Source: Anthoceros angustus (Eukaryota; Plantae; Anthocerotophyta). Taken from it: a DNA stretch of 64,000 nucleotides. Positions 1 to 51,182 of this stretch are shown piece after piece. Numbering within the stretch: the stretch's first letter is position 1; the number at the start of each line of letters is the position of its first letter. Below the pieces are notes generated by a model, which was given only the letters and a program-made list of their open reading frames with translations, was not told where the DNA came from and did no database searches. The stretch covers positions 1,612,001 to 1,676,000 of the forward strand of contig MU008165.1 of NCBI GenBank assembly GCA_010909165.1. Reading direction: 5' to 3'. The position numbers were made by a program, and so were the translations under genes.

Positions 1-3
1 ATC

Positions 4-21695: not shown

Positions 21696-21932
21696 TAAAG
21701 ATATGCATAAAGATATGCTGCCTCGGGATCATGCAACGCGGGTGTGAGAATAGAGCATGTGGAAGAAGTAGACGCACAAGCAAGGAATCACGAAAGAGAG
21801 TAAATTAAAGAGGAAATAGCACAAGGCTATATACATCAAGTAAAGCGGTTATTGAAACCGTCATAACTAAAATGTAGAACTAACTTCTTAACCTAGGCTA
21901 GGATACTTAAGGTACTAACCAGGTTTTCTATA
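21696..21932 (-). repeat. Copia 3' LTR (237 bp)
   Basis: Matches 50956-51182 apart from a few substitutions and 1-3 bp indels. It begins TATA directly after the PPT. Confidence 0.92.
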
Positions 21933-22125
21933 CTCCCACTTAGTTTTAGCATTTTTGAAACATAAAGAAGGAATCAAAAGTATTCTATGTACGTCTGAGA
22001 AACATAATGAATCCTCAGACTCCTGCTAAACGTGAGAACTGTCCTACACCGTCCAGTCCCGCTCACTCCTTGCTTACGCTCATCACGCTCCACGCCTACG
22101 CTCCAAGGCTCCAATAAGAACAGCA

Positions 22126-25754: not shown

Positions 25755-25785
25755 GGGTATAAGCATGGTTGGGTGCTCACTTTAG
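25755..25785 (+). repeat. Left TIR GGGTATAAGCATGGTTGGGTGCTCACTTTAG
   Basis: Inverted match to 48821-48852. Confidence 0.9.
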
Positions 25786-26518
25786 TTAGAAACGGTTGAA
25801 ACGCTCTTAATTTGTCCTCACGCAATGTTTACAATTATGAAAAATTCATTTCTTTTCCAATTTATCTGATTTTTTTTACATGTTATAGTCATGTCTATTT
25901 TTATCTAGGATTAAAATTTAATAAAGAATGGTATATTAAAATATGCTTTAAAAATTCAGGTGGTTTAAGGACAATGTCCCCACATAGGCCTTTTGCCGCT
26001 TCATTTCACGAACTCGTGGCCTGTGAACGGCCCGCCAACGCCTTCAAATGCTCCGAGTTTAATAATCAACATAGAATATCATTTTATGTGGTGCAGGGAT
26101 CGAGTACGTGCATACCGCTAGCCGGCAAATGACCTAGGTAATCAGAGCTCATCTTGAACTCGTAGGCTAGGTAATCGTGACAAGCTCCGGAGCTCAAACT
26201 TGAACTCTGGCCGGTAATCGTGACAAGCTCCGTGGCTACATGTGGAGGACGTGGTGGAAGGAGCGGATCGAGTTCGGACGGCGCTACAAGTTGCAAGTAG
26301 GTCGCTACCGGGTTGGTGGATAGTGCGGGCGGTGTCTTTGCTTCAAATCGGTGGATAGTGCCGTGGCGTTGGAGGTGGTGTCTGCAAACCCTTGGGCTGT
26401 TTTGGGACGGTGCTATGGCTCGGTCACCTTCCCAACAACGGAGTCGATGGGCGCAGCCAAACGCGCCGAACGGCGGAAGCACTAACGGTGAAGGTGCTTC
26501 ACGTGAAGTGGTGTCCGT

Positions 26519-29460
26519 GTGGGAAGAAGAAGGGGGATACATCCCGGAGGTGGACAGAGGCGGATGTTAGGAGTCACGCCTCCAGCGCCAAGGAGAGTAG
26601 GGAGGATGCTCCTTCCGGGAGAGTTGAAGGAGAGGCGTCAAAACATCAACAGCCCGTGTGCGAAGCATAGAGAGCGGCGGCTCTTGCCCACCGTATTAGG
26701 GAATGCTCGGCGAACAAGAAGTGGCTCGACACTAGCCAATCGCTTTTATGCCTTACGCATACACGGCAGAAAGTCGAGAGACATCTTGGAGGTGTTTAGT
26801 CACCTACCACTTCTCAAGTTGTATAGGCCGGGCTACAAAGGATGCAAAGAGATCCAACTAGGAGCATTGTTGTTGAAGAATGTGCGTGAGGCTTGCACAA
26901 ACTTGAAGGCGTTCAAGTTGGAGACCATTTGCGAGCAAGGAACACCTGCTCAACGTCATTTTATCTCAAGATCTCCAAGACAATCACCTTGTTGCTACGC
27001 TTTCCCACCACATTGGAGTCGCAGGAGGCGATCCATCGAGCCTAAGCACAAGGCGGGGAGGGCATGCCTCGCGATGATCCGGTTGGGTGATGGAAGGAGA
27101 TCAAGATCGATATCCTTTCGCCACATGTTAAGGCCACCATCGTCCACTTTTGGGAATCGACTTCCGTCCTTCATCCAACACAAAAGATACCAAGCGGTTG
27201 CGAATAGCAAAACGTTCATCAAACATATCACGCACTTTCTGGACATGTCACAGGTATGTGTGGAATTGTCTGACTTGCTAGGTTTCGAGATTTGTGTCTA
27301 GGTTGTTGCTGATCTCAAGGATGTGTCTTGGGTCCTTCTAACCTGCTTGTGTTTCCCTTCCTCATACAACCGTAGGGTGTCTTCCTATTGGGCAACTAAG
27401 TGGTGACCGCTATGCCGCCAAACAGAGGCACTGAACCGAGTGTGTTACATGTTTGTGTTACGCCACCGGGACCCAAGCTTGCATGTTTGACCCCAATGTC
27501 CTATGCTCACATATGATCTGCGACTCCATGTGGCCTCCATTGTGGGTTTGGTGTTGCTTTTACCACAGGTTTCTTAGGTGATTGGTGTGTTCTTCGTGAC
27601 ATGTGCACGGAGTTCTACCTTCGCCACAAGAACACCGGAAATACAAGTTGGGCAACGGTCATTCGAGAAGTTGAAGCCGTTCTTTGTTAAGAGCTTGCAA
27701 GAGCGCAATCTCTGCTTCATCGGTACCATGTGGAAATGGCGTTCCTTAAAGATGCCTTCAATAACCTCCGGCACAGCCTGTGGTTCACCCGTGGCGATGT
27801 CATTGTTCCCCTGTGTGTGCTCATCCTTTTGGCTCAAGAGCTTCATTGTAACGCCTCCACTTGTTTGGCTTCTTGAGGACACTATGTGAGCGTGTTCTTT
27901 GTGCAAAGGGTGAGGATCTGGCATTCCCCGGCATGCTTGCTAGGAACATGTGATGTGTGGTGTCAACACACTTCCTTCCGCCTTCGAGACATGTTTGGAT
28001 ATTCGCAAATCTTTGTTCTTAAGTGGCTATTTTTCAATATCGTAGTCGGAAAGGATCGATGGCAACGACAAGAAAAGGATCAAACTAGTGTTTAGGAAAC
28101 ACATCCTTCCGTGTTTGTGGAGTATCCGAAGGTAAGGTGAAGGAGTTTCATTTCATGATTATATCCAAATGGCGGGATAGAGTTCGGACATTGTCTCGAA
28201 TGGTTCCCAGGATGTTGTGGTTTCGATGCTCGATTTTGCTCGAACTATGCATTTGGGGTCCGAATGAGATTCAATCCATGCAATGGCGACGGTTACTATT
28301 TTGGTGTTGGTTTTCTGCGCAATGGCCTGTTGATGCGAGGACCACGGCGCATCAATTGAGAAGTACTATCACTTTTATATTAGCGATGACATGGTCCATG
28401 ACACTCTATTTGTGCAACCTTTGTTTGCTAAAGCGATTGGCGATGGATGCGGATTCCCTCAACCTCGAGAACACGGTGCTGGTCGGATGGGGCGCTAGCC
28501 AATTCAAAGCGTGTCGACCTAGCTACTTCATTGCTCGGTATCCTAGCATCACGGTGGGTGCAACATGCTTTGGTCTTATTTTGGAAGTGGGCACGGGAAG
28601 GGGAGCACGATGGTGCAGTGCCATCTTGAGCGTGCTCTGCGGCTGCAGTCGTCCCCTCACTGGCGGGATGGAAAATGCTGCGAGATGTGGTGGAGTACTG
28701 CGGCAAAACATCTCCGCAACCAGCTCTTATGCAAGTGCTTGATCATGTTCACCGAAGTTTTGGCTCATTGGAAAGACAGAGGTAAACCGAAACAAATTTG
28801 GTTGTGACCCCATACGGATCCAAGCAAATGCACGGCATATGGTTGTGACATGCATGACCCCACGCAATTGCGAATGCGGAGCCTTGCATGTTTCGCGAGT
28901 GTATGGAGAGCAACCATTCGGTGTGAAATGGTGCCTCATCGGCTTTTGGAGGTCGTCGAATCACACCTCATGGACAGTGCGGCCCCGACAAACACGACAA
29001 GCGGTTGACCAGCAAGTCCGCAGCGATGATTGCGATCGTGCACTTCCAACAATTGAAGCGGTGAGGATGATGATGTTAATGATGTCTCGAGATGGCGAGA
29101 TATCTTGGAAGTTGGAGATAACTTCCTTGTCTTGCACCTGCGGATGAAGGGCTGGATTTTTACCTGTTGACTTGCACTAAGGCCAAGCACACGTTCGAGT
29201 CTCGGTATTGCCCTTGGAGTAAAAGAGAATTCCAGTGGGAGGAGGTGGTTGTCGGACAATACTATATGTTGGAAAAGCATTTTGCCCGAGTCTGTATAGC
29301 TTGCCTTGGGATCCGGAGGAATGCATTTTGCCAGCTCAAATTGTTCGACATGCAAGTTCACAATGGCACCACATGGGCACGATGGAGAAGTCCATATAGG
29401 CTAACCAGCCCGGAACAAGTCACGCCTATGTCTATGAAAGCGAGGAAGGTGAGTACTCTT
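26519..29460 (+). pseudogene. Intron-containing Sola2-like transposase, frameshifted as assembled (boundaries approximate)
   Basis: Motifs across frames: RPSSNTKDTKRLRI..HFLDMSQ|gt; PEIQVGQRSFEKLKPFFVK; DFA(E)NYAF ~28232; NEIQSMQW ~28263; FYISDDMVHDT ~28373; WSDG(C)ASQFK ~28480; WSYFGSGHGKG(E)HDGA ~28571. Most breaks are single-base deletions. Confidence 0.82.
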
Positions 29461-29498
29461 ACCGGGAAGGCAGTTACGGTGGTTCATGATCAATCATG

Positions 29499-30040
29499 GT
29501 CTTGAGATGAGCACAACCCGATTCGATCAACACTGTCTGCGAGGAGGACAACGAATTAATGCAAGTGTCGTGCCCGATGATGTTATTTTCACATTGTTTG
29601 AGCTGCGTTTATCGATCTATGTTGTCACCTGCTTCGGGTGCCGAGTTTACTAGACTATGTTGTCACATGCAAGGTCAGGTACCGCCACAACATGTTTTGG
29701 CTCAAGACTTGTGACCCAAATTCGTGCTATAACGCCGTTTTTTTGATATATGTTTCGTTGCCACGATAGATCATGTTCATTCTGCGTCTTGAGATGAGCA
29801 CAACCCGATTGGATGAACACTCATCGCGAGGAGGACAACGAATTAATGCAAGCCGCCGTGCCCCAAGGTTTCTATTTTCACATTGCTCCGGGCCGCGTTT
29901 TCGAGATCGCTATGTTGTCACCTGCTTCGGGTGCCGAGTTTACTAGACTATGTTGTCACATCGCAGATTTGGCGGGTTCACAAAATGTTTTTGGCTCAAG
30001 ACTTGTGACCCAAATTCGTGCTATAACGCTGCTTTGTGAC
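29499..30040. repeat. 287-bp local direct repeat, 2 copies (also present in copy B near 39407-39870)
   Basis: GTCTTGAGATGAGCACAACCCGATT at 29499 and 29786. Confidence 0.85.
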
Positions 30041-30095
30041 ATCTGCCGCTGCCCTAATAGATGTGCGGGAGTGGGAGCTCAAGTTTGATAAAACT

Positions 30096-30589
30096 ATGGT
30101 ATGTGGGTATGTGGGTATGTGGGTATGTGGTATGTGGGTATGTGGGATGTGGGGATGTGGGGATGTGGGATGGGATGTGGGATGTGGGATGTGGGATGTG
30201 GGGATGTGGGATGGGGATGGGGATGGGGATGGGATGTGGGATGATGGGATGTGGGATGTGGGATGTGGGGATGTGGGTATGTGGGTATGTGGGTATGGGA
30301 TGGGGATGTGGGATGGGGATGGGGGGGGATGTGGTATGTGGATGGGATGTGGGATGGGATGTGGATGTGGGATGTGGGTATGATGTGGGGATGTGGGATG
30401 TGGGGATGTGGGATGTGGGATGTGGGATGTGGGATGTGGGATGGGGATGGGGATGTGGGATGGGGATGGGGATGTGGGGATGTGGGATGTGATGGGATGG
30501 GGATGTGGGATGGGGATGTGGTGGATGTGGGATGTGGGATGTGGGGATGCGGTGGGATGTGGGATGGGGATGTGGGATGGGGATGTGGG
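30096..30589. repeat. G-rich (GGGATGT/GGGGATGT/GGGTATGT)n simple repeat, copy A
   Basis: Directly visible, about 0.5 kb. Confidence 0.95.
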
Positions 30590-32259
30590 CTTGTTAGGTT
30601 ACTCCGAGACGCGCCGCTTTCTCACAATCCTTCTTACCGCTTATTTTGGCCAGGAGTCCGTGAGTGCGGCGTTGTTAGTGCGGTGCGGCGGCGGTGAGTG
30701 GACTCTTCATTCACACCGTGGCCGGGGCGTGGAGGGTCCATGGCAAACCAAACTGGGAGTTGGAGGGAGACGTGGGCCGAAGTGTCTACTCACCTTCCGC
30801 CCCTGCATCAAGACGTTGAATGTGAGGAGGATGCTTTTCATTCGCCACGCTTGTGCTTGATGAGGATAACGCAGTTCGTAAGGACCGCACGGGCAGCGTG
30901 CATGTTGTGATTCCGCTCCGGTTGGAATGTCAAGCTTGTATCCTTTGGATCTTTCAAAGCACGATCCACTTGGGAGTTGGGGTATCACTGGATGTAGGAA
31001 TGCTAATGAAGGCACGTTAGAATTTGCTAAGGCCCGGCGGGGTGCAGGATCCGAGCATGCTTGAGGCCGAGTGGTGGGTGTCGTGGCGCATAAGCCGCAC
31101 GGCTATGTGCAAATTCAAGTTGGAGCATGACATTCAAGGTTACTAGCTTCGGAGCTTCAAGGTGCAAAAGGAGTTCTGGACAAAATTCAAACATTGGTCA
31201 CATCAAAACGAGACAATGCTTTATGACTCGGGAGGCTGGGTGACTTGGGCAACCACGACCAGCAAGAGGTTGATTGTCCACATGTTGAAGGTTCTAACGG
31301 CAATAACAAATAGGTTTGAAAACCTGAAAGAGGACGCCCAGGCGGGTGGTAAGCAGTACCACCCCCAGTGGTTTCAAGTTCATGTGTTGTCCTTGAAGAC
31401 AGCCGCAACACTGCTTGCTGAGAAGTTGTAGTGGGCTATAGCAAGCATGAAGCCGGCGTTAAGAACTTTGTGGATGTGTTTCAGACATTGCTTCCTCGCC
31501 ATCGCTCACCGGCTTGTTGTGAAATTCTTTATCTCTCTAAATGGCCCTAGTTTTCCCATTTTCAATCATTGCAAACAAAGCACTCCATGCACTCTTCGCC
31601 GTTTCGGACTCTTGGTCACGTTGGCCTCAAATCTTTGGTCCCCTATGCCGGGTTCGATGTCGTTGAAAGGATCGAGGTCGAATTTTCAAAATCTATCGCT
31701 GATTGGCCATCCAGCCTTGCTTTCCTTACACTTGGGCATGTTCTAAAAGTAATCATGTCACCCACCCCTTCGGGCCTTATGCACACGAGTGGCCTCCTGC
31801 ATTGGCAATTTAAAGCCGGCAAGCACTTCGTAGACCACGCAAGCTAGCCCGCCTTTGTCCTTTGTGGAGATACGGCGGACTTCGCTCTTGTATGCAATGG
31901 AAGCGCACTTGGAGGAGTGGTTGGTGTGGGGAGGGACATGGAATCTTCAAGCCGGATTAGGCAAGCTGGCCAGGCACCCTCTTGCCGGAGGTGAGTATCA
32001 CCATTTGTCAATGACAGAAAGTCAGCTAGTCACCTTGGCCGCACACTACTTGCATCGAATGGAACGGGCCAAGGCACGCCAGCGCTACTGGAAGAAGGTC
32101 CGAGATCAGTGTGTGGCCCCATATGCCAGGCCTTCCACTGCCGCCAGGCACGCTGCTGCACATCATGGAGGTGGTCGGGTTGACGGCGAAGGCACCGATC
32201 TGCACAGTTTCCGGCAGGGGGACTCAAGCGAGGAGGACACTGGCGATGTGATAGATTGA
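30590..32259 (+). pseudogene. Cargo ORF 1, unknown protein, frameshifted (second copy about 40610-42180)
   Basis: Protein-like segments occur in both copies: ECGVVSA, SMANQTGSWRETWAEVSTH, RLCLMRITQF, KEFWTKFKHW, FQVHVLSLK, EEWLVWGGTWNLQAGLGKLARHPL. Confidence 0.5.
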
Positions 32260-32299
32260 GGGCGCCACCCGAGGTCGGGCAACAAGTTCCTTCCGTCCT

Positions 32300-33122
32300 G
32301 GCTGGCTCTGCACATCCACGACACTAGATAGGTTGTGTGACAATGGGTGGATGGCGGAGCGATCCCTTGATGCTTATTTTGTGGCATTGTACATTACATC
32401 GACTTTGGGCCACGAGGGTGGCGTGTGAAATGTGGTGTGGCATATTTTGGATCTTTGGTTTCATGTTAAAGCGGTTCGCAGAGCCGCCTTGTTGTGTTCA
32501 TTCCCACAAAATGTCTACATGGCCGTGTGTCTTAAACTAATCGGTGTCATTGGAATTGTATATGTGTCCGCCACGAGCATTGAATCTGGATCGACTCGAG
32601 CATTGTGTGAGACCATCCGAGGCCCTCTTTTCTCGAATCTGGGTTTGCTCGTAATTGAGCAATTACAACCGGTAGCTTCCTCCCAACGCTTGCTAAGAAC
32701 TACAAACGGAGAATTGCTTCACAGGACCCACAAAAACCGGTGCATTCTCCCACAAGTAACATGATTGTCAAAAGTGCAAGGATTCACATCTATGCCAATT
32801 ATGGATGCTTGCACATTAATGTCCATCCACGATCCTACACGTCTACAAGCCTTGACAAAAAGTGACCACCGTGGACTAAGAACAAAGCAAGCCCATGTAT
32901 ATTTTGCAGCAGGACCCCTCCCTTTACGCTATGTCGCCACAACTTGATCCAACCATGTTCTATATCCAGCAGAGCCAAGAAGTCGCGAGTGTTCTTGTTC
33001 TTCTCATTGGCCCCGGAATAGCTACCATTGGAAACTTCGTGGTCGATGGGCTTCAAGCATTATTGGGTCACCACGTGGCCTCGAATCCGAGTGGTAGGCA
33101 CTTTGTGAGGCACCGCTCATAG
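32300..33122 (+). pseudogene. Cargo ORF 2, unknown protein fragments (second copy about 42240-43030)
   Basis: VWHILDLWFHVKA, SKVQGFTSMPIMDACTL and DPTMFYIQQ read in both copies. Confidence 0.35.
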
Positions 33123-33239
33123 TAGTAACCTTTTCACAACCTTTTCACCGAAAAATCTCACCACCCCCACCGGATCTTGTACTAATGTGACCATGGGCTC
33201 AGGCAACGCAATACATACCAGAACTTTCTCTTTATTACT

Positions 33240-36200
33240 GTGCCTCGAACGCACCATGAAGTTATCTCACACACAGTGACGCACCAAATTCCAAACCCGG
33301 TTGTTCCACCATGGCACTTTGTGAAGCTTTCTTGGGACGCCTGGTCTCCGGACTTGGAGGCACCCTTCCGCTTTCAAGTTCACGAGTCTCGCCCGCTTGC
33401 CTTTTCTACGCAAAGATCGCCGTCCACCGGATACCTCCACCACTTGTGCACGATGCTTGAAGTGGCGATTTCTCCGCATCCTTATGAATGACAATAGCCA
33501 CTACTCTGGTTCGACACATAGTGGCTTCACCAGAGAATCGGCCATTGGAACACCAAAGACAAGTGGCCACATCCATACCACCGCAAAGCCACGCCATAGT
33601 GGTCACGCCCTCCCCATCCTTGCTGGGCACCTCCACCTCATCTTCCGCTGCATCCGTGGTCACTTCCACAGAGGCACAAGTTCTACAGTTGCGTGTTCGT
33701 CGCACAAGTGGTGTCATTCTTGTGACGAGTTTCATCATCATGCACAAGGTGGGTGTCCACCGCACGACCGAGTCTCGTAGAAAACTGGTATCCTCCCCAT
33801 CGGTATCCTCTTCCACCGCTCGGTATCCTCTTCCACCGCCGCATGCGATCTTCAACACACCGAGTTGTAGGTGGCCTTGTTGGAGCCGACCACACATGGG
33901 TGCCCACCTTGTGGCACCACCAATCGACCCATGTCGTTGAGTGGAATAAAACTGGGGCCAAGAACAAGAAGTCGCCACGTGAGAGGCATCTGCATCAACC
34001 AAAGGAGCCAACCCCAAACATGACACTGGATCGCCACATGAGTGGGCCAAATACCGCGCCACACCGCACGTAGTACGTGCCTCACCAGTGACTCAACTGG
34101 TTTGAGACACGGGACCACCAGATCTGGCGATTCCATGACATAGTTGTGCATTGGCCAACAGGCGAATCGAATCGGCCGCTTTGGGATAGGTGGCCGCCCA
34201 CGTGGTGGTGTGATCAACGCCTCAAGACCGCGAGGACAAGCAGCACCTACTATATGTGCCTAGGGACAAGCGATTAGCACAAAGGTCAGATATAGCTTTT
34301 CCATGCAAAGCAACAACCTTAGAGCACTACTAACTGTGAGACTCATGAACCGCCTTCTTATGTGAGTCACCAGGCACTATCCTGCAGACCATCCCCAACA
34401 ATTCTTCCAAACGGTGCTCCATGATGTGGAATTCTTGCAGTATGATAATGCTCGCCCACTCCTCGGTCACGCTTCCTGCATCCGTTGGACTCCACTAGTG
34501 AATGGCCAACCCTTGGCCTGCAACCACCGTGCCGGGACTTGAAGAGAACAAGCAGGATTGGGGCAGTCACCGACCAAAGATAGAGGCATACATGGAAAAT
34601 AAAGGCCCACAAGGGAGGAAAACAAAGTCATAGCATCCGAATCCCTACATAGCACCACAAAACCAATTGCGCTTAGATGCATGGAATAGATCTCGACACA
34701 AAACAAGGCATGCATACGGAAGTACCGTGCACACGCAGACTTCGTGATCCGGAGGGCTACATTCGCTAGTGTAAGAAGGGCTGGAATCCATTGAGGAGTC
34801 CTTTCTTTCTTGAGCGTCAAGCTATGTATGCGCCAAAGGCATCATGTAAATCCTCCGCGGATTAGCCTGGGAGGGCGCCACGCTTTTGTTGTTGGCTCTC
34901 AGATTGTCCGCCGCCTCCTTGCACGCAATTGCGCCTGGACACGAGCAACATGTGCATCTTCTACCTGCAAAGGACATAATTAGGTCGCTCGTGTGAGTAT
35001 GAAGTTGATGACTGCTCCACATAACCGCACCTCCTTGTTATAGCATTGCGCCAAGGGCGCGCCTGTGAGCTCCCCTAGAGCAATTTTTGCCGCAAGGTTG
35101 CTTGTCTCCTCGCTTGCAATCACCGACAGCCGGGTCTCTTGCGACAAGGAGATGAGGTCTTCCACCGATGCTTTTGATCTTTGTGTGCAACTCTAGTATC
35201 CCACTACACACGAAAACAAGTGTGCACACGACAACTTGAGGAAATGCTAACATGTCCACCATGCCACCCAAGAAGACAAGATGAGAAAGTGCCCACAGGT
35301 CCAAAATGTGACAGAATGCCAAGATGAATAGCTGCACATGTGTCCACAATGTCACATAATAACAATGGCATCGAATTGTAAAGATGTCCATGACAACATG
35401 ACGGCAGGAGAAATGCCCAGTGCACAACGTGACATGATGACGATGAACAAATGCCCAGTGCACAACGTGACATGATGAGCATGAACAAATGCCCACAAGT
35501 GCACAAAGTGACATGATGACAAGATGAACAATTGCCCACGGCACAACGTGAGATGATGATGATGAACAGAGGCCTACAGTGCACAACGTGACATGATGAC
35601 ATGAACAGATGCCTACAGTGCACAACGTGACACGATGACGATGAATATGCTGTGCACAACGTGATAATGACAAGATGAACAAATGCTTACAGTGCAACGC
35701 ATGATGACGATGAACAAATGTATTACTTCCACCTGAATACACGACGATCAAGAACCGCACACTCCAAGACACGTATCACCACCCGCCATGCATGACGGAT
35801 CGCACAAGGACGACGACATGACAAGCATACACTACATGCATACATGACGACATGACAAGACACCACTAGGTGTTGATGTGCCTGTGGCCCCCGCCAACCG
35901 CACGGATAGATGTCGGAATGCCCATGAGGCCCCTCTCCCTCCCTCCCCTCCGTGAAGAATCCTCACAATTGAGCTACCGCAAGAGTCTCTCGAATCCAGA
36001 AAACACCAAGCTCACACAAAAAGACGCTAGCAAGGTAAGTGAACTTTACAAGACCGAGGCTAAGTCAAAACCAGCAAAGAACTTGTCAAGCTTGTTGCTC
36101 CCTCTATGCAATCAATAAGAGCAAGCTCACATAAATCAAGCTCAAACTTAAACGTGATGGAAAAACCGTGAACAAACCCTTCCAAATGAGCGTTGGGCTC

Positions 36201-37050: not shown

Positions 37051-38560
37051 CACCGAGCACCTCGACCCACTCCAGACACCGCACATGTGCACACATTTGC
37101 ATTAAGCCGCTCAAGTTCTTCAATGACACACGAGGATCGAGAAGCTGCACTCGCACCCACCCAAGGCCACCTCACACCAGACACACTGCACCAGACATGT
37201 GCACACAAGACCGCAGCGCTCAAGTTCTTCACTCCACAAGACACAAGGAGAAGCGCACATCGGCACCCACTCCAACAAAATCACAATGCCACCACAAGCC
37301 TAGCACCACATGTGCACACAAGAGCATTATTCAGCTCAAGTCCTTCACGTAACATTGCACACAAGGAATGATCAAAGGAGCCGCCCTCGGCACCCACTAG
37401 AGCACCCTCACACGCCAAGACCTCACCGAGCCCAGACATGTCCACAATGCATTAAGCCGGCTCAAGTTCTTCGTGGACACCATAGACAAGGGAAGCCGCG
37501 TCGGCACCCACTCAAGGCTAGCACCCTCACGCGCAACATCTCACGGCCCGGATCACGCACATGTGCACAAGAGCATTACTCAGCTCAAGTCCTTCATCGT
37601 GACATTGAACACACGGAATGATCAAAGTGCACCTCGCAAGCACTGAGCACCTCACACGCCCAAAGACCTCAGAGCATGCACATGTCCACACAAGTTAAGC
37701 CGGCTCAAGTTCTTCTGACACCAGACAATGAGAAGCCGCACGCCGGCACCCACTCGCCAGCACCCTCACGCGCAAGATCTCACACTGCACCGCAGACATG
37801 TGCACACAGAGCATTATTCATGCTCAAGTCCTTCATCGTGACATTGAACACACGGAATGATCAAAGGAGCCGCACCGCACTGATCGAGCACCTCACACGC
37901 CCAAAGACCTCCCCTAGAGCATGCACATGTCCACACAAGACCGTTGCGGCTCAAGTTCTTCGACACCACAGACAATGAGAAGCCACGCCCCCACTCCAAG
38001 GCCAGCCTCACGACAAGATCTCATGCCCCCCGACATGTGCACACAAGAGCATTATTCAGCTCAAGTCCTTCACCGTGACATTGAACACACGGAATGATCA
38101 AAGGAGCCGACCCCACAGCATCGAGCACCTCACACGCCCAAAGACCTCACGCTAGAGCATGCACATGTCCACACAAGACCGCGTTGCCCAAGTTCTTCGG
38201 ACACCACATAATGAGAAGCCGCACACCACTCCAAGGCCAAGACCTCACAAGACAAGATCTCACCTGCACTCGCACATGTGCACACAAGAGCGTAAGCAAG
38301 GCTCAAGTCCTTCATCGTGACATTGAACACAAGGAATGATCAAAGGAGGCCGCACCCACTGAGCACCTCACACGCCCAAAGACCTCAAATTTCTAGAGCA
38401 TGCACATGTCCACACAAGACCGTTAAGCTGCTCAAGTTCTTCAAAGGACACCACGATAATGAGAAGCCGCACGCCGCACCCACTCCAAGGCCAAGACCTC
38501 ACGCCGCAAGACAAAGATCTCACACTGCACTGCATGTGCACACAAGAGCGTAGCAAGCCT
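37040..38560. repeat. About 240-bp tandem array, about 6 units, each made of two related ~120-bp halves (copy A)
   Basis: GGAATGATCAA marker at about 37365, 37615, 37854, 38091 and 38333. Confidence 0.92.
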
Positions 38561-39936
38561 CGTGGCGCAAAACACCGATTGCCACACAAGGCACATTACC
38601 TTCAAAATCGACAAACAAAACTGCTGATTCCAGCCGCCGCAGCTGATCTTGCATGTGGGGAGCCCGCTCGCATGTATGGGAAGGAGGGCTCATAAGAAGC
38701 CCCACATAGCTCACAATGCAAAGACAAAGGGTTGATTACAACAACGAGCTCGAGCACGCGAACTTTTGAGCCCGCGAGTGTGATCACGGGCCGGATGTGG
38801 GCGAGCAAGTGAGATTGCATCCAGCCGCTCGTATGGCGGGATCAACTCAAGATCGAGCTCGCGATGGCAATAGCGAGAGTGCACCCACGCCAGAAGGCCG
38901 AATTAAGCGGTTGACCAGCAAGTCCGCAGCGATGATTGCGATCGTGCACTTCCAACAATTGAAGCGGTGAGGATGATGATGTTGATGATGTCTCGAGAGA
39001 TGGCGAGATATCTTGGAAGTTGGAGATAACTTCCTTGTCTTGAGACCCTGAGATGAAGGGCTGGATTTTTACTTGACACTAAGGCCAAGCACACGTTCGA
39101 GTCTCGGTATTGCCCTTGGAGTAAAAGAGAATTCCAGTGGGAGGAGGTGGTTGTCGGACAATACTATATGTTGGAAAAGCATTTGCCCGAGTGTATAGCT
39201 TGCCTTGGGATCCGGAGGAATGCATTTTGCCACTCAAATTGTTCGAGACATGCAAGTTCACAATGGCACCACATGGGCACGATGGAGAAGTCCCTATATA
39301 GGCTAACCACGAGCCGTGAACAAGTCACGCCTATGTCTATGAAAGCGAGGAAGGTGAGTACTCTTACCGGGAAGTCGTAGTTACGGTGGTTCATGATCAA
39401 TCATGGTCTTGAGATGAGCACAACCCGATTCGATCAACACGCGTCGCGTGCGGAGAACAATTAATGCGTGCCCGATGATGTTATTTTCACATTGTTTGCG
39501 TTTATCGAGATCTATGTTGTCACCACATTTACGGGTGCCGAGTTTACTAGGCGTTGTCACACCTGTCACAGGCTTTGCAAGGTCTGTAGTTTCACAACAT
39601 GTTTTGGCTCAAGACTTGTGACCCAAATTGCTATAACGCTGCATCTTTTTGATATATGTTTCGTTGCCACGATAGATCATGTTCATTCTGCGGTCTTGAG
39701 ATGAGCACAACCCGATTGGATGAACACACTGTCGCGAGGAGGACAATTAATGCAAGTCGTGCCCCAGGTTTCTATTTTCACATTGCTGCGTTTTCGGCTA
39801 TGTTGTCACTGTTTAGTCATTTACTAGACTGTTGTCTGTTGTCAAGACTTTGCTGTCTGGTTTATGGCTCAGACTTGATTTGCTATATGTGCATGATATA
39901 TGTGTTGTAAATGATGCTCTAAGACTTGTGTATCTT

Positions 39937-40606
39937 GGGATGTGGTATATGTGGGTGTGGGTATGTGTATGTGGGTGGTGTATATGTGGGTGTGGGTATG
40001 GTATGTGTGGTATGGGTATGTGGTATGTGGGATGTATGTGGTGGAGTATGTGGGTATGTGTATGTGGGTATGTGGGTATGTGGGTATGTGGGGATGTGGG
40101 TATGTGATGTGGGATGTGGGATGTGGGATGTGGGGATGTGGGGATGTGGGATGTGGGATGTGGGATGTGGGATGTGGGATGTGGGGATGTGGGGATGTGG
40201 GGATGTGGGGATGTGGGATGTGGGATGTGGGATGTGGGGATGTGGGATGGGATGTGGGATGGGATGTGGATGTGGGATGTGGGGATGTGGATGGGGTGTG
40301 GGGATGTGGGATGATGTGGGATGTGGGATGGGATGTGGGATGGGGATGTGTGATGTGGGATGTGGGGATGTGGGATGTGGGATGTGGGATGTGGGGATGT
40401 GGGATGTGGGATGTGGGATGTGGGGATGTGGGGATGTGGGGATGTGGGATGTGGGGATGTGGGGATGTGGGATGTGATGGGATGGGGATGGGGATGTGGA
40501 TGTGGGATGGGATGTGGGATGGGATGTGTGTATGTGGGATGTGGGATGTGGGATGTGTGGGGATGTGGGGATGTGGGGATGCGGGATGTGGGTATGCTGA
40601 TGTGGG
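39937..40606. repeat. G-rich (GGGATGT)n simple repeat, copy B
   Basis: Directly visible, about 0.67 kb. Confidence 0.95.
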
Positions 40607-43600
40607 TCGCCCGCTTGTTAGGTTACTCAGGGCGTGCGCTTTCTCACAATCCTTCTTACTTATTTTGGCGGACAGTCCGTGAGTGCGGCGGCGTTGTTAG
40701 TGCGTGCGGGGCGGTGTTGACGGGACTCTTCATTCCGGGGCCGGAGTGGAGGGTCCATGGCAAACCAAACTCGGGAGTTGGAGGGAGGCGTCGCAGCGGC
40801 CGAAGTGTCTACTCCACGCCCGACCTCAAGACGCGTTGAATGTGAGGAGGATGCTTTTCTATTGTCACGTTTGTGCTTGATGAGGACAACGCATCGGTTA
40901 TGGCACGGCAGGCTGCATGTTGTGATTCCGCTCCGGTTGGAATGTCAAGCTTGTATCCTTTGGATCTTCAAAGCGATCCGACTTGGGAGTTGGGGTATTT
41001 GGGTAGGAATGCTAATGAAGGCACGTTAGAATTTGCTGCAGGCACAGTCGGCCGCCTGCAGGATCCGAGCATGCCGAGGCGGTGGTGGGTGTCGTGGCCA
41101 TAAAACAGCGGTATGTGCAAATTCAAGTTGAGACATTCGAGGTTACTAGCTTGGGCTTCAAGGTGCAAAAGGAGTTCTGGACAAAATTCAAACATTGGTG
41201 CGACATACGCTAAGAGACAATCGTCGACTCGGGAGGCTGGGTGACTTGGTTGCAACCACCAGCAAGAGGTTGATTGTCCACATGTTGAAGGTTCTAACGG
41301 CAATAACAAATAGGTTTGAAAACGAAAGAGGGCGCGGTGGTAAGCGATCCACCCAGTGGTTTCAAGTTCATGTGTTGTCCTTGAAGGCAGTAACTTCTTT
41401 GAGAAGTTGTAGTGGGCTATAGCAAGCATGAAGCGGCGTTAAGAACTTTGTGGATGTGTTTGAGACATTGCTTCGCGCTTCATTTGACTTGTTGTGAAAT
41501 TCTTTATCTCGTAAATGGCCCTAGTTTTCCCATTTTCAATCATTGCAAACAAAGCGACTCCATGCACTCTTGTCGGACTCTTGGTCACGTTGGCCTCAAA
41601 TCTTTGGTCCCCTATGCCGGGTTCGACAAGTTGAAAGGATCGAGGTCGAATTTTCAAAATCTATCGCCTGATTGGCCATCCAGCCTTGCTTTCCTTACAC
41701 TTGGGCATGTTCTAAAGTAATCATGTCACCCACCTTTCGGTGGCCTTATGCACACGTGGCCTCCGCATTGGCAATTTAAAGCCGGCAAGCACTTCGTAGA
41801 CCACGCAAGCTAGCCGCCTTTGTCCTTTGTGGAGATCGGTTGCGGACTTCGCTCTTGTATGCAATGGAAGCGATTGCGAGGAGTGGTTGGTGTGGGGAGG
41901 GACATGGAATCTTCAAGCCGGATTAGGCAAGCTGGCCAGGCACCCTCTTGGCGGAGGTGAGCGCCCATTTGTCAATGAAAGTCACCTTGGCCGCACTACT
42001 TGCATCGAATGGAACGGGCCAAGGCACGCAAGCGCCAGGAAGAAGGTCCGAGATCGGGTGTGGCCCCATATGCCAAGCCTTCCACGCTGCACACATCATG
42101 GAGGTGGTCGGGTTGGCGGCACCGATCTGCCGATTCGGCGGGGGACTCAAGCGAGGAGGACAGCGATGTGATAGATTGAGGGCGCCAGGTCGGGCAACAA
42201 GTTCCTTCCGTCTGGCTAGCTCGCACATCCACGACACTAGATAGGTTGTGTGACAATGGGTGGATGGCGAATCCCTTGATGCTTATTTTGTGGCATTGTA
42301 CATTACATCGACTTTGGGCCACGAGGGTGGTGAAATCGGTGGTGTGGCATATTTTGGATCTTTGGTTTCATGTTAAAGCTGGTTCTGCGGTAGCCTCTTT
42401 GTTGTGTGTTCTCCCACAAAATGTCTACATGGCGTGTGTCATTAATCGTGTCATTGGAATTGCATATGTGTGTGCCACGAGCTCGAGCGGATCGACTCAC
42501 GAATTGTTTTCGTAGACCATCCGAGGCCCTCTTTTCTCGCGCAATCGGGTTTGCTCGTAATTGAGCAATTACAACCTAGCTTCCTCCCAACGCGTTGCTA
42601 AGAACTACAAACGGAGAATTGCTTCACAGACCCACAAAAACCGGTGCATTCTCCCACAAGTAACATGATTGTCAAAAGTGCAAGGATTCACATCTATGCC
42701 AATTATGGATGCTTGCACATTAATCTGTCCATCCACGGATCCTACGTCTCAAGCCTTGACAAAAAGTGACCACAGGACTAAGAACAAAGCAAGCCCATGT
42801 ATATTTTGCAGGACCCCTCCCTTTATGTCGCCACAACTTGATCCAACCATGTTCTATATCCAGCAGAGAGCCGTAAAGGCTGAGTGTTCTTGTTCTTCTC
42901 ATTGGCCACAGGAATAGCTACCATTGGAAACTTCGTGGTCGGGGAGCCTCAAAGCATTATTGGGTCACCACGTGGCCCTGAATCCAAAGTGGTAGGCACT
43001 TTTGTCGATGAGGCACGCTCATAGTAGTAACCTTTTCACAACCTTTTCACCTGCAAAATCTCACCACCCTGGATCTTGATTTGCACTAATGTGACCATGG
43101 GCTCATGCAGCAATACATACCACGAACTTTCTCTTTATTACCAGCCTCGAGCACATGAAGTTATCTCACTGGACGCACTTCCAAACCGCGGTTGTTCCAC
43201 CATGGCACTTTGTGAAGCTTTCTTGGGACGCCTGGTCTCCGGACTTGAGGCACCCTTCCGCTTTCAAGTTCACAGTGCCTCCCTTTTCTACGCAAAGGCG
43301 GCGTCGTCCACGGATACCTCCACCACTTGGTGCGTGATGCTTCGGAAGTGGCGATTTCTCCGCATCCTTATGAATGACAATAGCCACTTCCGGTGGCACA
43401 CATAGTGGCCGCTTGGTAGAATCGGCCATTGGAACACCACAAGTGGCCACATCCATACCGGTCTGCAAAGCCACCGCCATAGTGGTCACGTCCTCCCCAT
43501 CCTTCTTGGGCACCTCCACCTCATCTTCTAGTTGCATCCGGGTCACTTGACGGGCACAAGTTCTGAGTTGCGTGTTAAATGCACTGTATGTGTCATTCTT

Positions 43601-46600
43601 GGCCAGAGTTTCATCATCATGCACAAGGTGGGTGTCCACCGCACGACGAGTCTCGGTGTAGAAAACACAGGTATCCTCCGCCGCTGGTATCCTCTTCCGC
43701 CGGGTATCCTCTTCTGCGCATTGCGATCTTCAACACACCGAGTTGTAGGTGGCCTTGTTGGGTGAGCGACCACACATGGGTGCCACCTTGTGGACCAATC
43801 GACCCATGTCGGTGAGTGGAACAGCGGGGCCGCAAACAAAGAAGTCGCCACGTGAGAGGCATCTGCATCAACCAAAGGAGCCAACCCCAAACATGACATC
43901 ACCGCCACATGAGTGGGCCAAATACGCGTCTGCGCACCGCACGTGCCTCACGAGACTCAATCCACAGGTTTGAGACACAGGGACCACCGATCCGCGACTC
44001 CATGACATAGTTGTGCATTGGCCAACAGGGCGAATCAATGCTTTGGGATAGGTGGCCGCTGCCCACGTGGTGGTGTGATCAACGCCTCGACAAGCGAGGG
44101 CAGCGTGACCTACTATGTGCCTAGGGACAAGCGAGAATTGCTATTAGCACAAAGGTCATATAGCTTTTCCATGCAAAGCAACAACCTTAGAGCACTACTA
44201 ACGGAGACTCATGAACGCCTTCTTATGTGAGTCACCAGGGCACTATCTGTATCGGCAGTCCCAACAATTCTTCCAAACGGTGCTCCATGATGTGGAATTC
44301 TTGCAGTGACCATGATAATGCTCATCCACTCGTTCGGTCACGTTCCGGGCATCCGTTGGACTCCACTAGTGAATGGCCAACCCTTGGCCTGCAACCACAT
44401 CCGGACTTGAAGAGAACAAGCGATTGGGCAGTCACCACGAGCATGTGTTGGTAGAGGCGCATCGCAAAGTGCCCACAAGGGAGGAAAACAAAGTCATAGC
44501 ATCCGAATCCCTACATAGCACCACAAAAACCAGTTGCGATAGATGCATGGGAATAGATCTCGACACAAAACAAGGCATGCATACTGGCAAGTACGGTGTA
44601 CACGCGGCGCCGTGATGGAGGCTACATTCGCTAGTGTAAGAATGGAATCCATTGAGGAGTCCTTTCTTTCTTGAGCGTCAAGCTATGTATGCGGCCAAAG
44701 GCATCATGTAAATCCTCCGATTAACGATTCGTTGGGCGTCACGCTTTTTGGCTCTCGATTGTCCGCCGCCTCCGCAATTGTGCACGGACACGAGCAACAT
44801 GTGCATCTTCTACAAGACGATTACATAATTAGCTCGTGTGAGTATGAAGTTGATGGCTCCACATAACCGCACCTCCTTGTTATAGCAGATTGCGCCAAGG
44901 GCGCTCTGTGAGCTCCCCTAGAGCAATTTTTCTTTGCAAGGTTGCTTGTCCTCGCTTGCAATCACCGGACTGGTCTCTTGCTTGACAAGGAGATGAGGTC
45001 TTCCACCGATTCGTTTTGATCTTTGTGTGCAACTCTAAGCGTATCTACTACACGAAAACAAGTGTGCAGGACAACTTGAGGAAATGCTAACATGTCCACC
45101 ATGCCACCCAAGAAGACAAGATGAGAAAGTGCCACAGTCCAAAATGTGACGAATGCCGCATGAATAGCACATGTGTCCACAATGTCACATAATAACAATG
45201 GCATCAATTGTAAAGATGTCCATGACAACATGACGGGGGAGAAATGCCCACAGTGCACAACGTGACATGATGAAGATGAACAAATGCCCACAGTGCTGGC
45301 GTGACATGATGATGATGAACAAATGCCCACAAGTGCACAAAGTGACATGATGAGATGAACAATTGCACGGGTACAACGTGAGATGATGACGGCATGAGCG
45401 AGGCCTACGGTGCTGGCGTGACATGATGACGGCATGAGCGGATGCCTACGGTGCACTGGCGTGACACGATGATGAGCGGATGCCTACGGTGCTGGCGTAC
45501 GATGGCGGCATGAACAAATGCTTACAGTGCTGCGTGGCGTGACATGATACGCGATGAACAAATCGTCACTTCCACCGTGAATACACGGCGGCCAAAGCGC
45601 CCACACTCCAAGACGTCCGTATCACCCGGCCATGCCGCATGACGGGACTGTGAGACGGCGACAAGCCACTACATGCGAGACATGGCGACATGACACCACT
45701 AGGTGTTGATGTGTGATGGCCAAAGCGCACGGATAGATGTCGGAATGCCCATGAGGCCCCTCTCCCTCCCTCCCTCCCGTGAAGAATCCTCACAATTGAG
45801 CTACGCAGAGTCTATCTCGAATCCACGAGAAAACACCAAGCTCACACAACGTACATTAGCGGTAAGTGAACTTTACAAGGCGAGGCTAAGTCAAAAAGCA
45901 AAGAACTTGTCAAGCTTGTTGCTCCCTCTGCAATCTATAAGAGCAAGCTCACATAAATCAAGCTCAAACACATTAAACGTGATGGATGCGAAAACCGAAC
46001 AAACCCTTCCAAATGAGCGTTGGGCTCAAGGCAGTCCTGCAGGTCCTAAGCAAAGCACATGACCTAAGGGTAGCACTCAGAATCTTAAACCGCGGAATCT
46101 AAAACTATAAGGAAAACCCACGACATTGCACACTGTCTCCGGTTCTACATCCTCCGCTCCGAACGCATGGTTTCCGTCCTCCTCGGCCCTATGACATCAA
46201 CCTCCTCTTGAGAATACATTCTTGCTCACGCTCCGTGCATGCAAGTCCTCATTTGGTCTTGCTCTCCACCGGCGTCACCTCTAACCTCATCACGGTGTCC
46301 TCAGTCAGGGACACCGCCACCTTCTTGCCCTTCCTCTGTGACCTCGTCATAGGGCCATGTGATCCAGTCTCCTTCTCCTTGTGCACTTTCTTCTCCATGT
46401 CCTCACATTTCTTGTGCTTGGAGGCCTTTACCTCATTAGTTTTCTGCATAGGCCAGCGGACACATGCAACTTTTTCTCAACAAGGATGCCAATGGCCATC
46501 AACCTAGGGATCTTCGCCCCGATGCTAACTTGCCGTATATCTTGAAAACCAAGTCGATGTTTCTCCACTCCTTGTCGGCTTATCATCCCTTCCACCCATA

Positions 46601-46859
46601 AGCATCATTGCTCAGTTACCCCAAACCGGAGGGTAAGCACGCGTCCCGCCGCCTCCCTCAAACCTTGCTGCAACTTGCTTTGGCGAACATCCACTCCTTC
46701 CACCCATTGTAGTCTCCTTCATGCCAAGACCCGGGAACGCTTCCACTTTGCACGCCTCCAAGGCTCGACTCACACGCGCTCAACATGTTTTTGAGGGCAC
46801 GCTTTTGATTCCTTGAGATGCCTAATGTCTCCTCCTCATCGAGGAAGCCATGTCACTCC

Positions 46860-48310
46860 AACACGAGCACCTCGGCACTCCAGATACGCACATGTGCACA
46901 CATTTGCATTAAGCTGCTCAAGTTCTTGACGGCACACAGAGGATCGGGCGCACCTCGGCACCTCAAGGCCACCCTCACGCCCGGCACCTCACGGCCCAGA
47001 ACGCACATGTGCACACAAGACCGCAGCAGGCTCAAGTTCTTCACTCCGGCGCACACGGAGGCACGCCGGCACCCACTCAACAAAATCACAATGCCACCAC
47101 CTCACAAGCCTACGCACATGTGCACACAAGAGCATTATTCGAGGCTCAAGTCCTTCAACGTAACATTGCACACAAGGAATGATCAAGGAGCCACCTCGGC
47201 ACCCACTAGAGCACCCTCACACGCCCACCTCACAGAGCTGCACATGTCCACAGCAGGCCGTTAGCTCAAGTTCTTGAGGACACCATAGACAAGGGAAGCC
47301 GCGTCGGCACCCACTCAAGGCTAGCACCCTCACGCGCAACATCTCACGGCCCGGATCACGCACATGTGCACAAGAGCATTACTCGGGCTCAAGTCCTTCA
47401 ACGTGACATTGAACACACGGAATGATCAAAGGCGCACCTCGGCCTGTTGGAGCACCCTCACCGCAGGCCTCACAGAGCATGCACATGTCCACACAACCGT
47501 TAAGCTCAAGTTCTTGATGACACCAGACAATGAGAAGCCGTCGGCACCACTCCAGAGGCCTCACCTCACGCCACGACATCTCGGCCCGGACCAGCATGTG
47601 CACAAGAGCATTATTCGAGGCTCAAGTCCTTCAACGTGACATTGAACACACGGAATGATCAAGGAGTCGGCTGGAGCACCCTCACCGCCCGACACCTCAC
47701 CCTAGAGCATGCATGTCCACACAAGGCCGTTAAGCGGCTCAAGTTCTTGATGACACCACGCAATGAGAAGCCGCGTCGGCACCCACTCAAGGCCCGGCAC
47801 CCTCACGCGCCTGACATCTCACGGCCCGGACCGCACATGTGCACAAGAGCGTAGCAAGGCTCAAGTCCTTGACATTCACAAGGAATGATCAAAGGCGCCT
47901 CGGCACCCGGAGCACCCTCACGCCCGACCTCACGGCCTAGAGCATGCACATGTCCACACAAGACCGTTAAGCGGCTCAAGTTCTTGATGACACCGACAAT
48001 GAGAAGCCGCGTCGGCACCCACTCAAGGCCCGGCACCCTCAGCGCCCACATCTCACGGCCCGGACCTGCACACAAGAGCGTAAAGCAAGGCTCAAGTCCT
48101 TCAACATGACATTGAACACGGAATGATCAAAGGCCTCGGCACCCCAACGAGCACCTCACGCCACGCCCTAGAGCATGCACATGTCACACAAGACCGTTAA
48201 GCGGCTCAAGTTCTTGATGACACCACAATGAGAAGCCCGTCGCCACCCACTCCAAGGCCAAGACCTCACGGATCTCACTGCACCACACATGTGCACACAA
48301 GGCGTAAGCA
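46860..48310. repeat. About 240-bp tandem array, copy B
   Basis: GGAATGATCAA marker at about 47176, 47419, 47652, 47882 and 48120. Confidence 0.92.
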
Positions 48311-48820
48311 AGCCTCGAACACACTGCCACACAAGGCACATTACCTTCAAAGCACAAACAAAAGCTAGCGATTCCAGCCGCGGCCGATCTTGCATGTGGG
48401 GAGCCCGCGTTACAGAAGGAAGGAGGGCTCCTTAAAGCCCCATAGCTCACAATGCAGCAAAGGGTTGATTACAACAACGAGCTCGAGCACGCGAACTTTT
48501 GAGCAGGAGTGTCGATGTCGGAGATGTGGGGAGCAAGTCAGAGATTGCATCCGGTATCTCGGCGGAGGATCAACTCATCGAGCTCGCGATGGCAATAGCG
48601 AGTGCACCCAGTAAGGCCGAATTGGGGTGGCGGTTGACTTACCACCGGATAAAACAGATCCAAGTAAAGTAAAGTAAGTTAAAGTAAATAATAGCAAACG
48701 AAAAGTATATAAAAGTGAAACTAACATATATTGAAATATTATTTTAATGAAAACTTAAAGTCACCCTCTCACATCTCTCTATCCTTTTCAAAGTAACCAA
48801 GTGTACCAAGCCATATGGTA

Positions 48821-48852
48821 CTAAAGTGTACCACCAAACCATGCTACCACCC
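48821..48852 (-). repeat. Right TIR (reverse complement GGGTGGTAGCATGGTTTGGTGGTACACTTTAG)
   Basis: Inverted match to 25755-25785, followed by TSD TATG. Confidence 0.9.
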
Positions 48853-50955: not shown

Positions 50956-51182
50956 TAAAGATATGCATAAAGATATGCGCCTCGGATCATGCAACGGGTG
51001 TGAGAATAGAGCATGGAAGAAGTAGACGCAAGCAAGGAATCAATAAAGAGAGTGTATTAAAGAGGAAATAGCACAAGGCTATATACATCAAGCAAAGCGG
51101 TTATTGAAACCGGTCATAACTAAAATGTAGAACTAACTTCTTAACCTAGGCTAGGATACTTAAGGTACTAACCGTGTTTATA
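50956..51182 (-). repeat. Copia 5' LTR (227 bp)
   Basis: Matches 21696-21932 and is flanked by TSD CACCC. Confidence 0.92.

Follow-up and report, generated by a model that had tools for sequence, protein, structure and literature searches.

The 23,098-bp block at positions 25755–48852 of the window (the whole 64-kb stretch of Anthoceros DNA analysed here) is a genuine cut-and-paste transposon with terminal inverted repeats (TIRs) and a 4-bp target site duplication (TSD). Most likely, it is a Sola2-type transposon of ~13.3 kb before duplication, found in the integrase of a Ty1/copia retrotransposon, with its interior doubled and with small indels that are mostly assembly errors. Its size is owed largely to the internal duplication. 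As a new host record for the known Sola2 type, the element is rather ordinary; it adds a plant host for Sola2 and a clean example of nested insertion with a defined TSD.

According to the series of events that we propose, a Sola2-type element of ~13.3 kb would have inserted by cut-and-paste in the integrase-coding region of the copia, duplicating the 4-bp TATG. The element would carry a single intron-containing DDD transposase gene close to its left end, the remainder being a long interior in which three tandem arrays, but no gene, can be recognised; doubling in tandem of a 9.9-kb interior segment, including the 3′ end of the transposase gene, would account for the 23.1 kb assembled.

The insertion and its copia host

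The block begins with GGG, ends with CCC and has TATG on either side, at 25751–25754 (left TSD copy) and 48853–48856 (right TSD copy), so that the ends and the 4-bp TSD described in an earlier note on this DNA are borne out. The left TIR (25755–25786, + strand) starts with GGGTATAAGCATGG and the right one (48820–48852, - strand) ends with ..CTACCACCC; when the left end is aligned with the reverse complement of the right end, identity is 27/33 with one gap, and not the 31/32 match given in that note. Removal in silico of the block along with one TATG joins the minus-strand copia integrase ORF in frame (..HCRLGQVNFQRLGTLIKGETYREPLDF..). Because of the TATG on both sides and of the in-frame restoration of the copia ORF, the insertion is real, and its placement in a copia, also proposed earlier, holds.

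The host Ty1/copia, split by the insertion, extends from 21696 to 51188 (- strand) and is recognised by its LTR pair and by the Pfam domains Retrotran_gag_2, Pol_BBD, rve and RVT_2 in the flanks. The probable LTRs lie at 21696–21938 and 50956–51188 (- strand) and, being repeated sequence, are indel-rich, while the gag ORF (518 aa) and the RT ORF (485 aa) show no frameshift. A search of the interior of the inserted element yielded neither extra copies of the terminal motif nor any long repeats, whether inverted or LTR-like, and, therefore, the element is not itself nested. No second copy of it was found in the 64-kb window or in the collections searched.

The transposase and its probable assignment to Sola2

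The relic of a Sola2-type DDD transposase is found at 26783–29265 (+ strand). Its upstream exon (26783–27253, +), which ends with ..HFLDMSQ followed by a donor-like GTATGT, belongs to a 264-aa ORF that, compared with 1.84 billion proteins with HMMER, had as sole match P0001, an anonymous Logan singleton (E 6e-4; BLASTP 7e-11) that is informative for the upstream exon only; the exon is also matched by tblastx, at 27209–27256, by the metagenome relative L001. Homology to both P0001 and L001 breaks off at 27253–27256 and picks up again at 27617, and this gap suggests a probable intron at 27254–27577 (+), the acceptor of which was not located. Thus, for the intron-containing transposase reported earlier, the junction after 27253 is supported, and no other intron is.

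The DDD catalytic core (27617–28608, +) was identified by profile search and tblastn, with the Asp codons at 28232–28234 (LDFA), 28486–28488 (WSDGA) and 28609–28611 (EHDGA) of the + strand. The C-terminal part (28841–29265, +), recognised by tblastn/tblastx to L001, L019, L094 and L068 and by self-tblastx, extends into the duplicated unit, and its end is, therefore, present twice. To read the core, the frame has to be changed at least six times and an in-frame stop (28331–28333) has to be passed, all within ~1 kb; as assembled, this is not an intact autonomous copy, and assembly error may be the cause. The motifs DFA.NY, SDGA.SQFK and HGKG.EHDG are present in the window only when read across frames, and the forms DFxENY, SDG.xQ(F/Y)K and HGKGxxDG, as written in the earlier note, are absent from every single frame.

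Relatives of the transposase were collected by running on metagenomes a degenerate motif pattern derived from the window, which matched at least 120 loci, with ~0 expected by chance on a rough estimate. When ORFs of these relatives were compared with positions 27620–29265 by tblastn, E-values of 2e-17 (L001), 2e-10 (L087) and 6.5e-10 (L019) were obtained. A piecewise hmmsearch with a 604-state profile, built from nine anonymous metagenome relatives, returned eight colinear pieces covering profile positions 213–542, on the + strand only, five of them with E-values of 4.8e-9, 3.6e-6, 2.8e-4, 1e-3 and 1.1e-3 and three being weak. Furthermore, DF[SA]EN lies 76–96 aa ahead of the SDG Asp in 51 of the 56 relatives with enough upstream sequence, the distance in the window being 85 aa. 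The relatives are anonymous sequences in which no Pfam family was found, and Pfam returned nothing beyond chance on the transposase pieces. The motif pattern had no match in viral contigs, an Atlas search with a transposase piece gave none, and a metagenome scan for loci related to P0001 and the window exon yielded nothing. Three of the loci (L097, L116 and L118), of a moss type, are one and the same locus, with one TIR-like right end, GGGTGGATGCATGAATGGGTG, and no left end within the locus.

According to the earlier note, Sola2 termini begin with 5′-GRG, as do those of the GGG...CCC element. The TATG/TATG pair has the 4-bp length of the Sola2 TSD (PMC3627910), and the published DFa-2 consensus starts with GAGCATTT (PMC3627910). 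The published Sola2 transposase motifs, MDFKENI / FWSDGAKHFKS / YHGKSDVD (PMC3627910), are spaced in Sola2_DFa-2 as MDFKENI - 87 aa - WSDGAKHFKS - 30 aa - HGKSDVD (PMC3627910, Additional file 3); in the window, the series is LDFA.NY - 85 aa - WSDGA.SQFKA - ~28 aa - HGKG.EHDG, order and spacing thus agreeing in a comparison made by eye with the paper supplement rather than by alignment score. The Sola2-like character claimed earlier is, therefore, supported by motifs that follow one another in the order, and at the distances, seen in published Sola2 transposases and in the 120 metagenome relatives, and the element is probably a Sola2, as judged from motifs read by eye, their spacing and anonymous relatives, with the TIR match of 27/33 counting against it. 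Given this basis of judgement, and the reported kinship of the three Sola groups, the transposase might belong to Sola1, to Sola3 or to a DDD family that has no name; however, motif order and spacing fit two published Sola2 transposases and DUF7869 was matched neither in the transposase pieces nor in ten relatives, so that we regard such an origin as quite improbable.

The closest parallels are the Sola2 elements DFa-1/2/3 and PPa-1/4/5 of dictyostelid amoebae (Bao and Jurka 2013, PMC3627910), which also have a 4-bp TSD and GAG/GGG 5′ ends, short imperfect TIRs (12–22 bp there), the same DDD motif order and spacing and, like the Anthoceros element, long non-transposase parts within a length of 10–15 kb. 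They differ in their AT-rich TSDs (AWWT), as opposed to TATG in the land-plant host, and in carrying Fanzor1 as a passenger gene, whereas none is recognisable in Anthoceros. The suggestion that the family may be undescribed in seed-free plants is not supported, Sola having been reported in ferns in the Azolla and Ceratopteris genome papers. Nor is this a new system, as the earlier note would have it: Sola2 is an already known type, and a paper of 2013 (PMC3627910) had described Sola2 elements of 10–15 kb that carry passenger genes.

The internal duplication and the origin of the indels

The element is laid out as A (3.2 kb), B1 (9.9 kb), B2 (9.7 kb) and C (0.23 kb). The copies B1 (28999–38904, +, 9,906 bp) and B2 (38905–48623, +, 9,719 bp) of the duplicated unit stand head to tail, and are followed by a unique right subterminal segment (48624–48819, +) that is part of C. 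Three tandem arrays, all on the + strand, were found by TRF in both copies: a (TGGGATG)n G-rich minisatellite (30097–30589 in B1 and 39936–40606 in B2, with ~72 and ~92 copies, respectively), a 38-bp array (35411–35720 and 45242–45548) and a 237-bp array of ~5 copies (37308–38504 and 47125–48259), the latter lying, in B2, ~0.6 kb from the right end of the element. The internal duplication reported earlier is thus confirmed as a tandem one of ~9.8 kb, as are the G-rich tract and the two repeat arrays. An Rfam scan of 20–53 kb gave nothing.

Comparison of B1 with B2 shows 22 isolated substitutions over 3,498 clean sites (0.6%) and 341 gap openings. Since this 0.6% is below a rough count, made by eye, for the copia LTR pair, the duplication may have occurred after the insertion or may stem from the assembly, and mobilisation as one 23.1-kb unit, which had been claimed, is unsupported, the two copies being too alike. 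A 9-mer, GCGGTTGAC, lies just within both breakpoints of the duplication, 2 nt from one and 6 nt from the other, and speaks for a duplication of biological origin rather than an artefact of assembly, although it gives no date. A real element of ~13.3 kb, with the 9.9-kb duplication being an artefact of assembly, is the less likely alternative, albeit one to be reckoned with: the differences between B1 and B2 do have the profile of consensus errors, but the head-to-tail junction is clean, the same 9-mer lies beside both breakpoints, as in microhomology-associated duplications, and the array copy numbers are unequal between B1 and B2.

The profile of these differences is peculiar. Clean indels outnumber isolated substitutions by ~6:1, transitions are about as frequent as transversions, and the small indels are G/C-biased and two- to three-fold enriched at CG/CHG sites, 44% of them adjoining CG (21% background) and 35% adjoining CHG (12.5% background). 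In the same window, a PPR ORF of 1,362 aa has no frameshift. Because substitutions are few and indels many, CG/CHG sites are enriched and nearby unique genes are clean, most of the apparent decay is read as assembly noise, most frameshifts and small indels probably being consensus errors in repeated, methylated DNA. If so, the actual element may be of recent age, with a transposase that is possibly intact. For the noise in the single-copy segment A, which equals that in B, the error model offers no direct explanation; it would need other near-identical copies elsewhere in the genome.

The indels might instead be real mutations of a truly old dead copy, i.e. a long-decayed, non-autonomous element mobilised in trans into the copia. 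The frame changes (at least six) and the stop within 1 kb, while the older host copia retains ORFs of 485–518 aa, would agree with it, and trans-mobilised non-autonomous giant elements have been described in Ectocarpus; however, the ~6:1 indel ratio, the parity of transitions and transversions and the CG/CHG enrichment are unexpected for neutral decay in plant DNA, and we find this origin unlikely. From the viewpoint of method, the lesson is that repeated, methylated DNA in this assembly carries dense small-indel errors and, therefore, that 'dead' transposases and 'diverged' duplications are not to be trusted at face value.

The interior and the question of cargo

The earlier note described a giant cargo-carrying element with at least three ORF regions, a description that the analysis of the interior does not support. 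Pfam scans of 398 ORF pieces drawn from A, B1 and B2 detected no family, whether ParB-like, N4/N6 DNA methyltransferase or any other, and the long ORFs at ~33.3–34.1 kb occur on either strand and in several frames, which is what composition alone would produce. A RING-H2 pattern or core is absent from all frames of B1/B2 and from the 120 relative loci, although indel noise could mask one. Among 143 pieces, a zf-C3HC4-like match (E 0.004) was dismissed as noise, as it was not reproduced on five Cys-rich candidate pieces picked. The interior had no tblastx match in the 120 relative loci, an Atlas search with an interior piece gave no usable match, and a word-index protein search with the 217-aa, 264-aa and 127-aa ORFs, in a length range that excludes full-length transposases, returned none. 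Thus, with neither a family nor a relative match, no non-transposase gene can be identified in this copy.

It is, nevertheless, conceivable that B holds accessory genes travelling with the transposase, and that this Sola2 family is, as the earlier note proposed, truly a giant one that carries genes. The 9.9-kb B unit has no detectable nested TIR or LTR structures, some + strand pieces at 31147–32256, present in both B1 and B2, are protein-like, and passenger genes are found in published Sola2 elements (PMC3627910). Set against the 398 ORF pieces devoid of Pfam families, the absence of RING-H2, ParB or methyltransferase signals, the failure of the interior to match the relative loci or the Atlas, and long ORFs explicable by composition, these points leave such a family doubtful. 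It is just as doubtful that B hides at least one lineage-specific accessory gene, obscured by assembly noise, in an undescribed multi-gene Sola2 family of bryophytes or seed-free plants. Conserved accessory genes, if the interior proved to contain them, would be relevant to the gain and retention of passenger genes by large DNA transposons; the present copy gives no evidence of this.

With respect to other large elements, Sola1-1_Ec32 of Ectocarpus (21.5 kb; PMC12477816) is likewise a Sola-superfamily element of giant size, bounded by TIRs and with a long interior, but it carries a ParB plus N4/N6 DNA methyltransferase gene; neither such a gene nor DUF7869 is detectable in the Anthoceros element. 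The large non-autonomous transposons of the CACTA/EnSpm and MULE types are unlike it in TSD length, termini and transposase family, and have in common with it a long, non-coding-looking interior, tandem arrays close to one end and possible mobilisation in trans.

Boundaries and internal organization

The element extends from 25755 (..ttTATG|GGGTATAAGCATGG..) to 48852 (..CATGCTACCACCC|TATGagg..), a length of 23,098 bp, with TATG present on both sides as a 4-bp target site duplication (TSD). When it is deleted together with one TATG, a minus-strand ORF becomes continuous in frame (..STQL*HCRLGQVNFQRLGTLIKGETYREPLDFSFNSDAFCEACQLSKAHSLPY..) across a stretch that we take to lie immediately ahead of the copia integrase core; in the ORFs on either side, Pfam identifies Retrotran_gag_2, Pol_BBD, rve and RVT_2 in copia order, and self-comparison places the probable LTR pair at 21696-21938 and 50956-51188. 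The flanking TATG and the rejoined frame uphold the 4-bp TSD and the insertion into a copia proposed in the earlier note, but the 31/32 match that it gave for the terminal inverted repeats (TIRs) has to be revised to 27 identical columns of 33, with one gap. No extra copy of the terminal motif was found within 25755-48852.

Self-comparison of the window also resolves a head-to-tail duplication, B1 (28999-38904) and B2 (38905-48623), between a unique left part of 3.2 kb (A) and a unique right part of 229 bp (C); minus the duplication, the element measures about 13.3 kb. The sequence GCGGTTGAC occurs inside each of the duplication breakpoints, at a distance of 2 nt from one and 6 nt from the other. 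The G-rich tract and two repeat arrays described previously are found in each B copy, as a (TGGGATG)n tract, a 38-40-bp array and a 233-237-bp array. The (TGGGATG)n runs (30097-30589 and 39936-40606; 72-92 units, unequal in number between B1 and B2) carry all G on one strand, with a GC skew of up to 0.41 per 2 kb, and could form G-quadruplexes. Self-comparison reveals no long inverted or LTR-like repeats in the element interior, which argues against recognisable nested elements.

The transposase relic and its relatives

The broken frames of the DDD transposase lie near the left end of the element (26783-29265, plus strand). The motifs previously attributed to it are absent from every single reading frame, but they can be recovered by hopping between frames, which yields MLDFA, NEIQS, ISDDMVHD, WSDGA, SQFKA, HGKG and EHDGA; the motif claim therefore stands across frames and in no one frame. 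Pfam, word-index protein searches and Atlas returned no match for the pieces. HMMER with a 264-aa ORF gave a single match, an anonymous 197-aa protein (P0001), whose similarity covers 26783-27262 and ends at ..FLDMSQ; the window sequence at this point, CAG|GTATGT, looks like an exon end.

A degenerate DNA pattern that encodes DG..Q[FY]K and HGKG..DG with 22-32 aa between them was used to scan metagenome contigs. About zero matches are estimated by chance; at least 120 loci match, many of them with ORFs of 600-1,000 aa. The closest relatives among the matches listed read VWSDGAASQFKa.RPFYFVARY..LTG..MWSFf.SGHGKGEHDGAGAV.KR, and the corresponding window pieces are CWSDGA, SQFKACRPSYFIARYPS, GGCNMLWSYFGSGHGKG and EHDGAV. 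In tblastn, ORFs of these relatives match 27620-29265 (plus strand) with E-values of 2e-17 (L001), 2e-10 (L087), 6.5e-10 (L019) and 1e-8 (L085). A 604-state profile built from nine relatives, run against all stop-free pieces of the window singly and unjoined, matches eight colinear pieces at 27617-28608 (profile positions 213-542; E-values of 4.8e-9, 3.6e-6, 2.8e-4, 1e-3 and 1.1e-3, plus three weak pieces), in the frame sequence 1,0,2,0,1,1,2,1, and nothing comparable in the rest of the window. HGKG (28592-28603) and EHDGA (28603-28617) share one base and, therefore, a frameshift falls precisely at that point.

With the sole exception of the Ulp1 protease tail of one locus, Pfam assigns no family to ten relatives, which agrees with PMC5751038, where the nuclease domains of Sola are said to have no detectable similarity to Pfam domains. 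The exception, L074:983-4054 (minus strand), encodes a 1,024-aa transposase relative with a C-terminal Ulp1 protease (Peptidase_C48, E 1.8e-15).

Two Sola2 transposases are printed in Additional file 3 of PMC3627910, and the motifs of Sola2_DFa-2 (..VLMDFKENIALGMGPEELSQNFY..VFSDVLNHCSSYV..FFWSDGAKHFKS..WQFSAQYHGKSDVDRH) occur, as compared by eye, in the same order in the window. The first and second Asp are separated by 87 aa in Sola2_DFa-2, by 85 aa in the window and, among the matches listed, by 76-96 aa in 51 of the 56 relatives that extend far enough upstream; the HGK His follows the second Asp at a distance of 37 aa in Sola2_DFa-2 and 35 aa in L001, the closest relative among those matches. 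The Sola2 elements described in that source are 10.3-15.3 kb long, end in short TIRs, are flanked by 4-bp TSDs and carry Fanzor1 (PMC3627910). Since the window element resembles them in motif order, spacing, TSD, TIRs and, without the duplication, length, the designation 'Sola2-type' is accepted, on a comparison made by eye with Sola2 proteins.

Three loci from separate metagenome samples (L097, L116 and L118; contigs Ga0116227, Ga0209611 and Ga0116229) are 99.6-99.9% identical across 7-11 kb surrounding a Sola2-type transposase and appear to be one eukaryotic host locus sequenced several times; their TIR-like end, GGGTGGATGCATGAATGGGTG, is similar to the end of the window element.

Cargo and precedents

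ORF pieces of at least 60 aa and of 35-59 aa in A and B1, and the 150 longest of at least 39 aa in B2, were scanned with Pfam. None of these 398 pieces has a match above chance, neither ParB nor a methyltransferase was found among them, and a RING-H2 pattern was found neither in the scans nor by motif searches. Similarly, tblastx of 29.3-39.0 kb against the at least 120 relative loci gave no match among the loci listed. Since the interior gave no match to a Pfam family, the RING-H2 motif or a listed relative locus, the cargo that the earlier note had ascribed to the element is unshown. The long ORFs on both strands and in several frames at about 33.3-34.1 kb can be explained by composition alone; some plus-strand pieces at 31.1-32.3 kb are protein-like in appearance, with no supporting match.

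The range of Sola was reportedly described by Bao et al. in 2009 as extending to plants. The genome papers on Azolla/Salvinia and on Ceratopteris already include Sola elements, and the suggestion that the family may be undescribed in seed-free plants is not supported. Giant Sola1 elements with accessory genes have been described in Ectocarpus, and 10-15 kb Sola2 elements with passenger genes in amoebae (PMC3627910). The window element belongs to a kind already known and is not a new system.

Indels in repeated DNA

The alignment of B1 with B2 contains 1,024 mismatches and 341 gap openings, but isolated mismatches, with six matches on either side, affect 22 of 3,498 sites (0.6%). Clean indels outnumber them about 6:1, are mainly 1-4 bp long and G/C-biased, and are found in both copies; transitions are about as frequent as transversions. 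Of the small indels, 44% fall no more than 2 nt from a CG (21% background) and 35% are equally close to a CHG (12.5% background). Such a spectrum is not that of neutral decay. Non-duplicated DNA of the window retains intact frames (a 1,362-aa PPR ORF, a Methyltransf_29 gene and two copia ORFs, 518 and 485 aa long), and the indel-rich DNA is repeated (the LTR pair, the 1.7-kb direct repeat at 11159-14577 and B1/B2). We infer that the consensus escaped correction where read mapping was ambiguous and the DNA methylated. Each copy of B has an indel about every 55 nt, a density sufficient to account for the transposase frameshifts and, for this reason, the actual element copy may be young.

The 0.6% between B1 and B2 is below the divergence of the copia LTR pair, roughly counted by eye as about 2-3% in 244 bp, which suggests that the duplication may be later than the insertion; transposition of the 23 kb as one unit, as formerly claimed, is thus not established.

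Indels of 1-2 bp, several at CG/TG/CA dinucleotides, account for most of the differences within the LTR pair, in contrast to the copia gag ORF, which runs for 1.5 kb without a frameshift; error or indel density is highly uneven across the assembly. The tandem direct repeat (11159-12876 and 12868-14577; 32 substitutions and 17 indels) could represent tandem LTRs or a duplicated segment. The Methyltransf_29 gene (4323-6457, minus strand; a plant QUA2-type putative SAM methyltransferase) is represented by two exon-like ORFs (7.9e-120 and 3.1e-29), both with a clean frame. The PPR ORF (1-4086, plus strand) is open over at least 1,362 aa and extends beyond the window start; its product belongs to the PLS class of PPR proteins and has an E motif (PPR_2 1.8e-166, E_motif 1.6e-9), and the internal period of the ORF, about 312 bp, is visible as 73-77% self-similarity.
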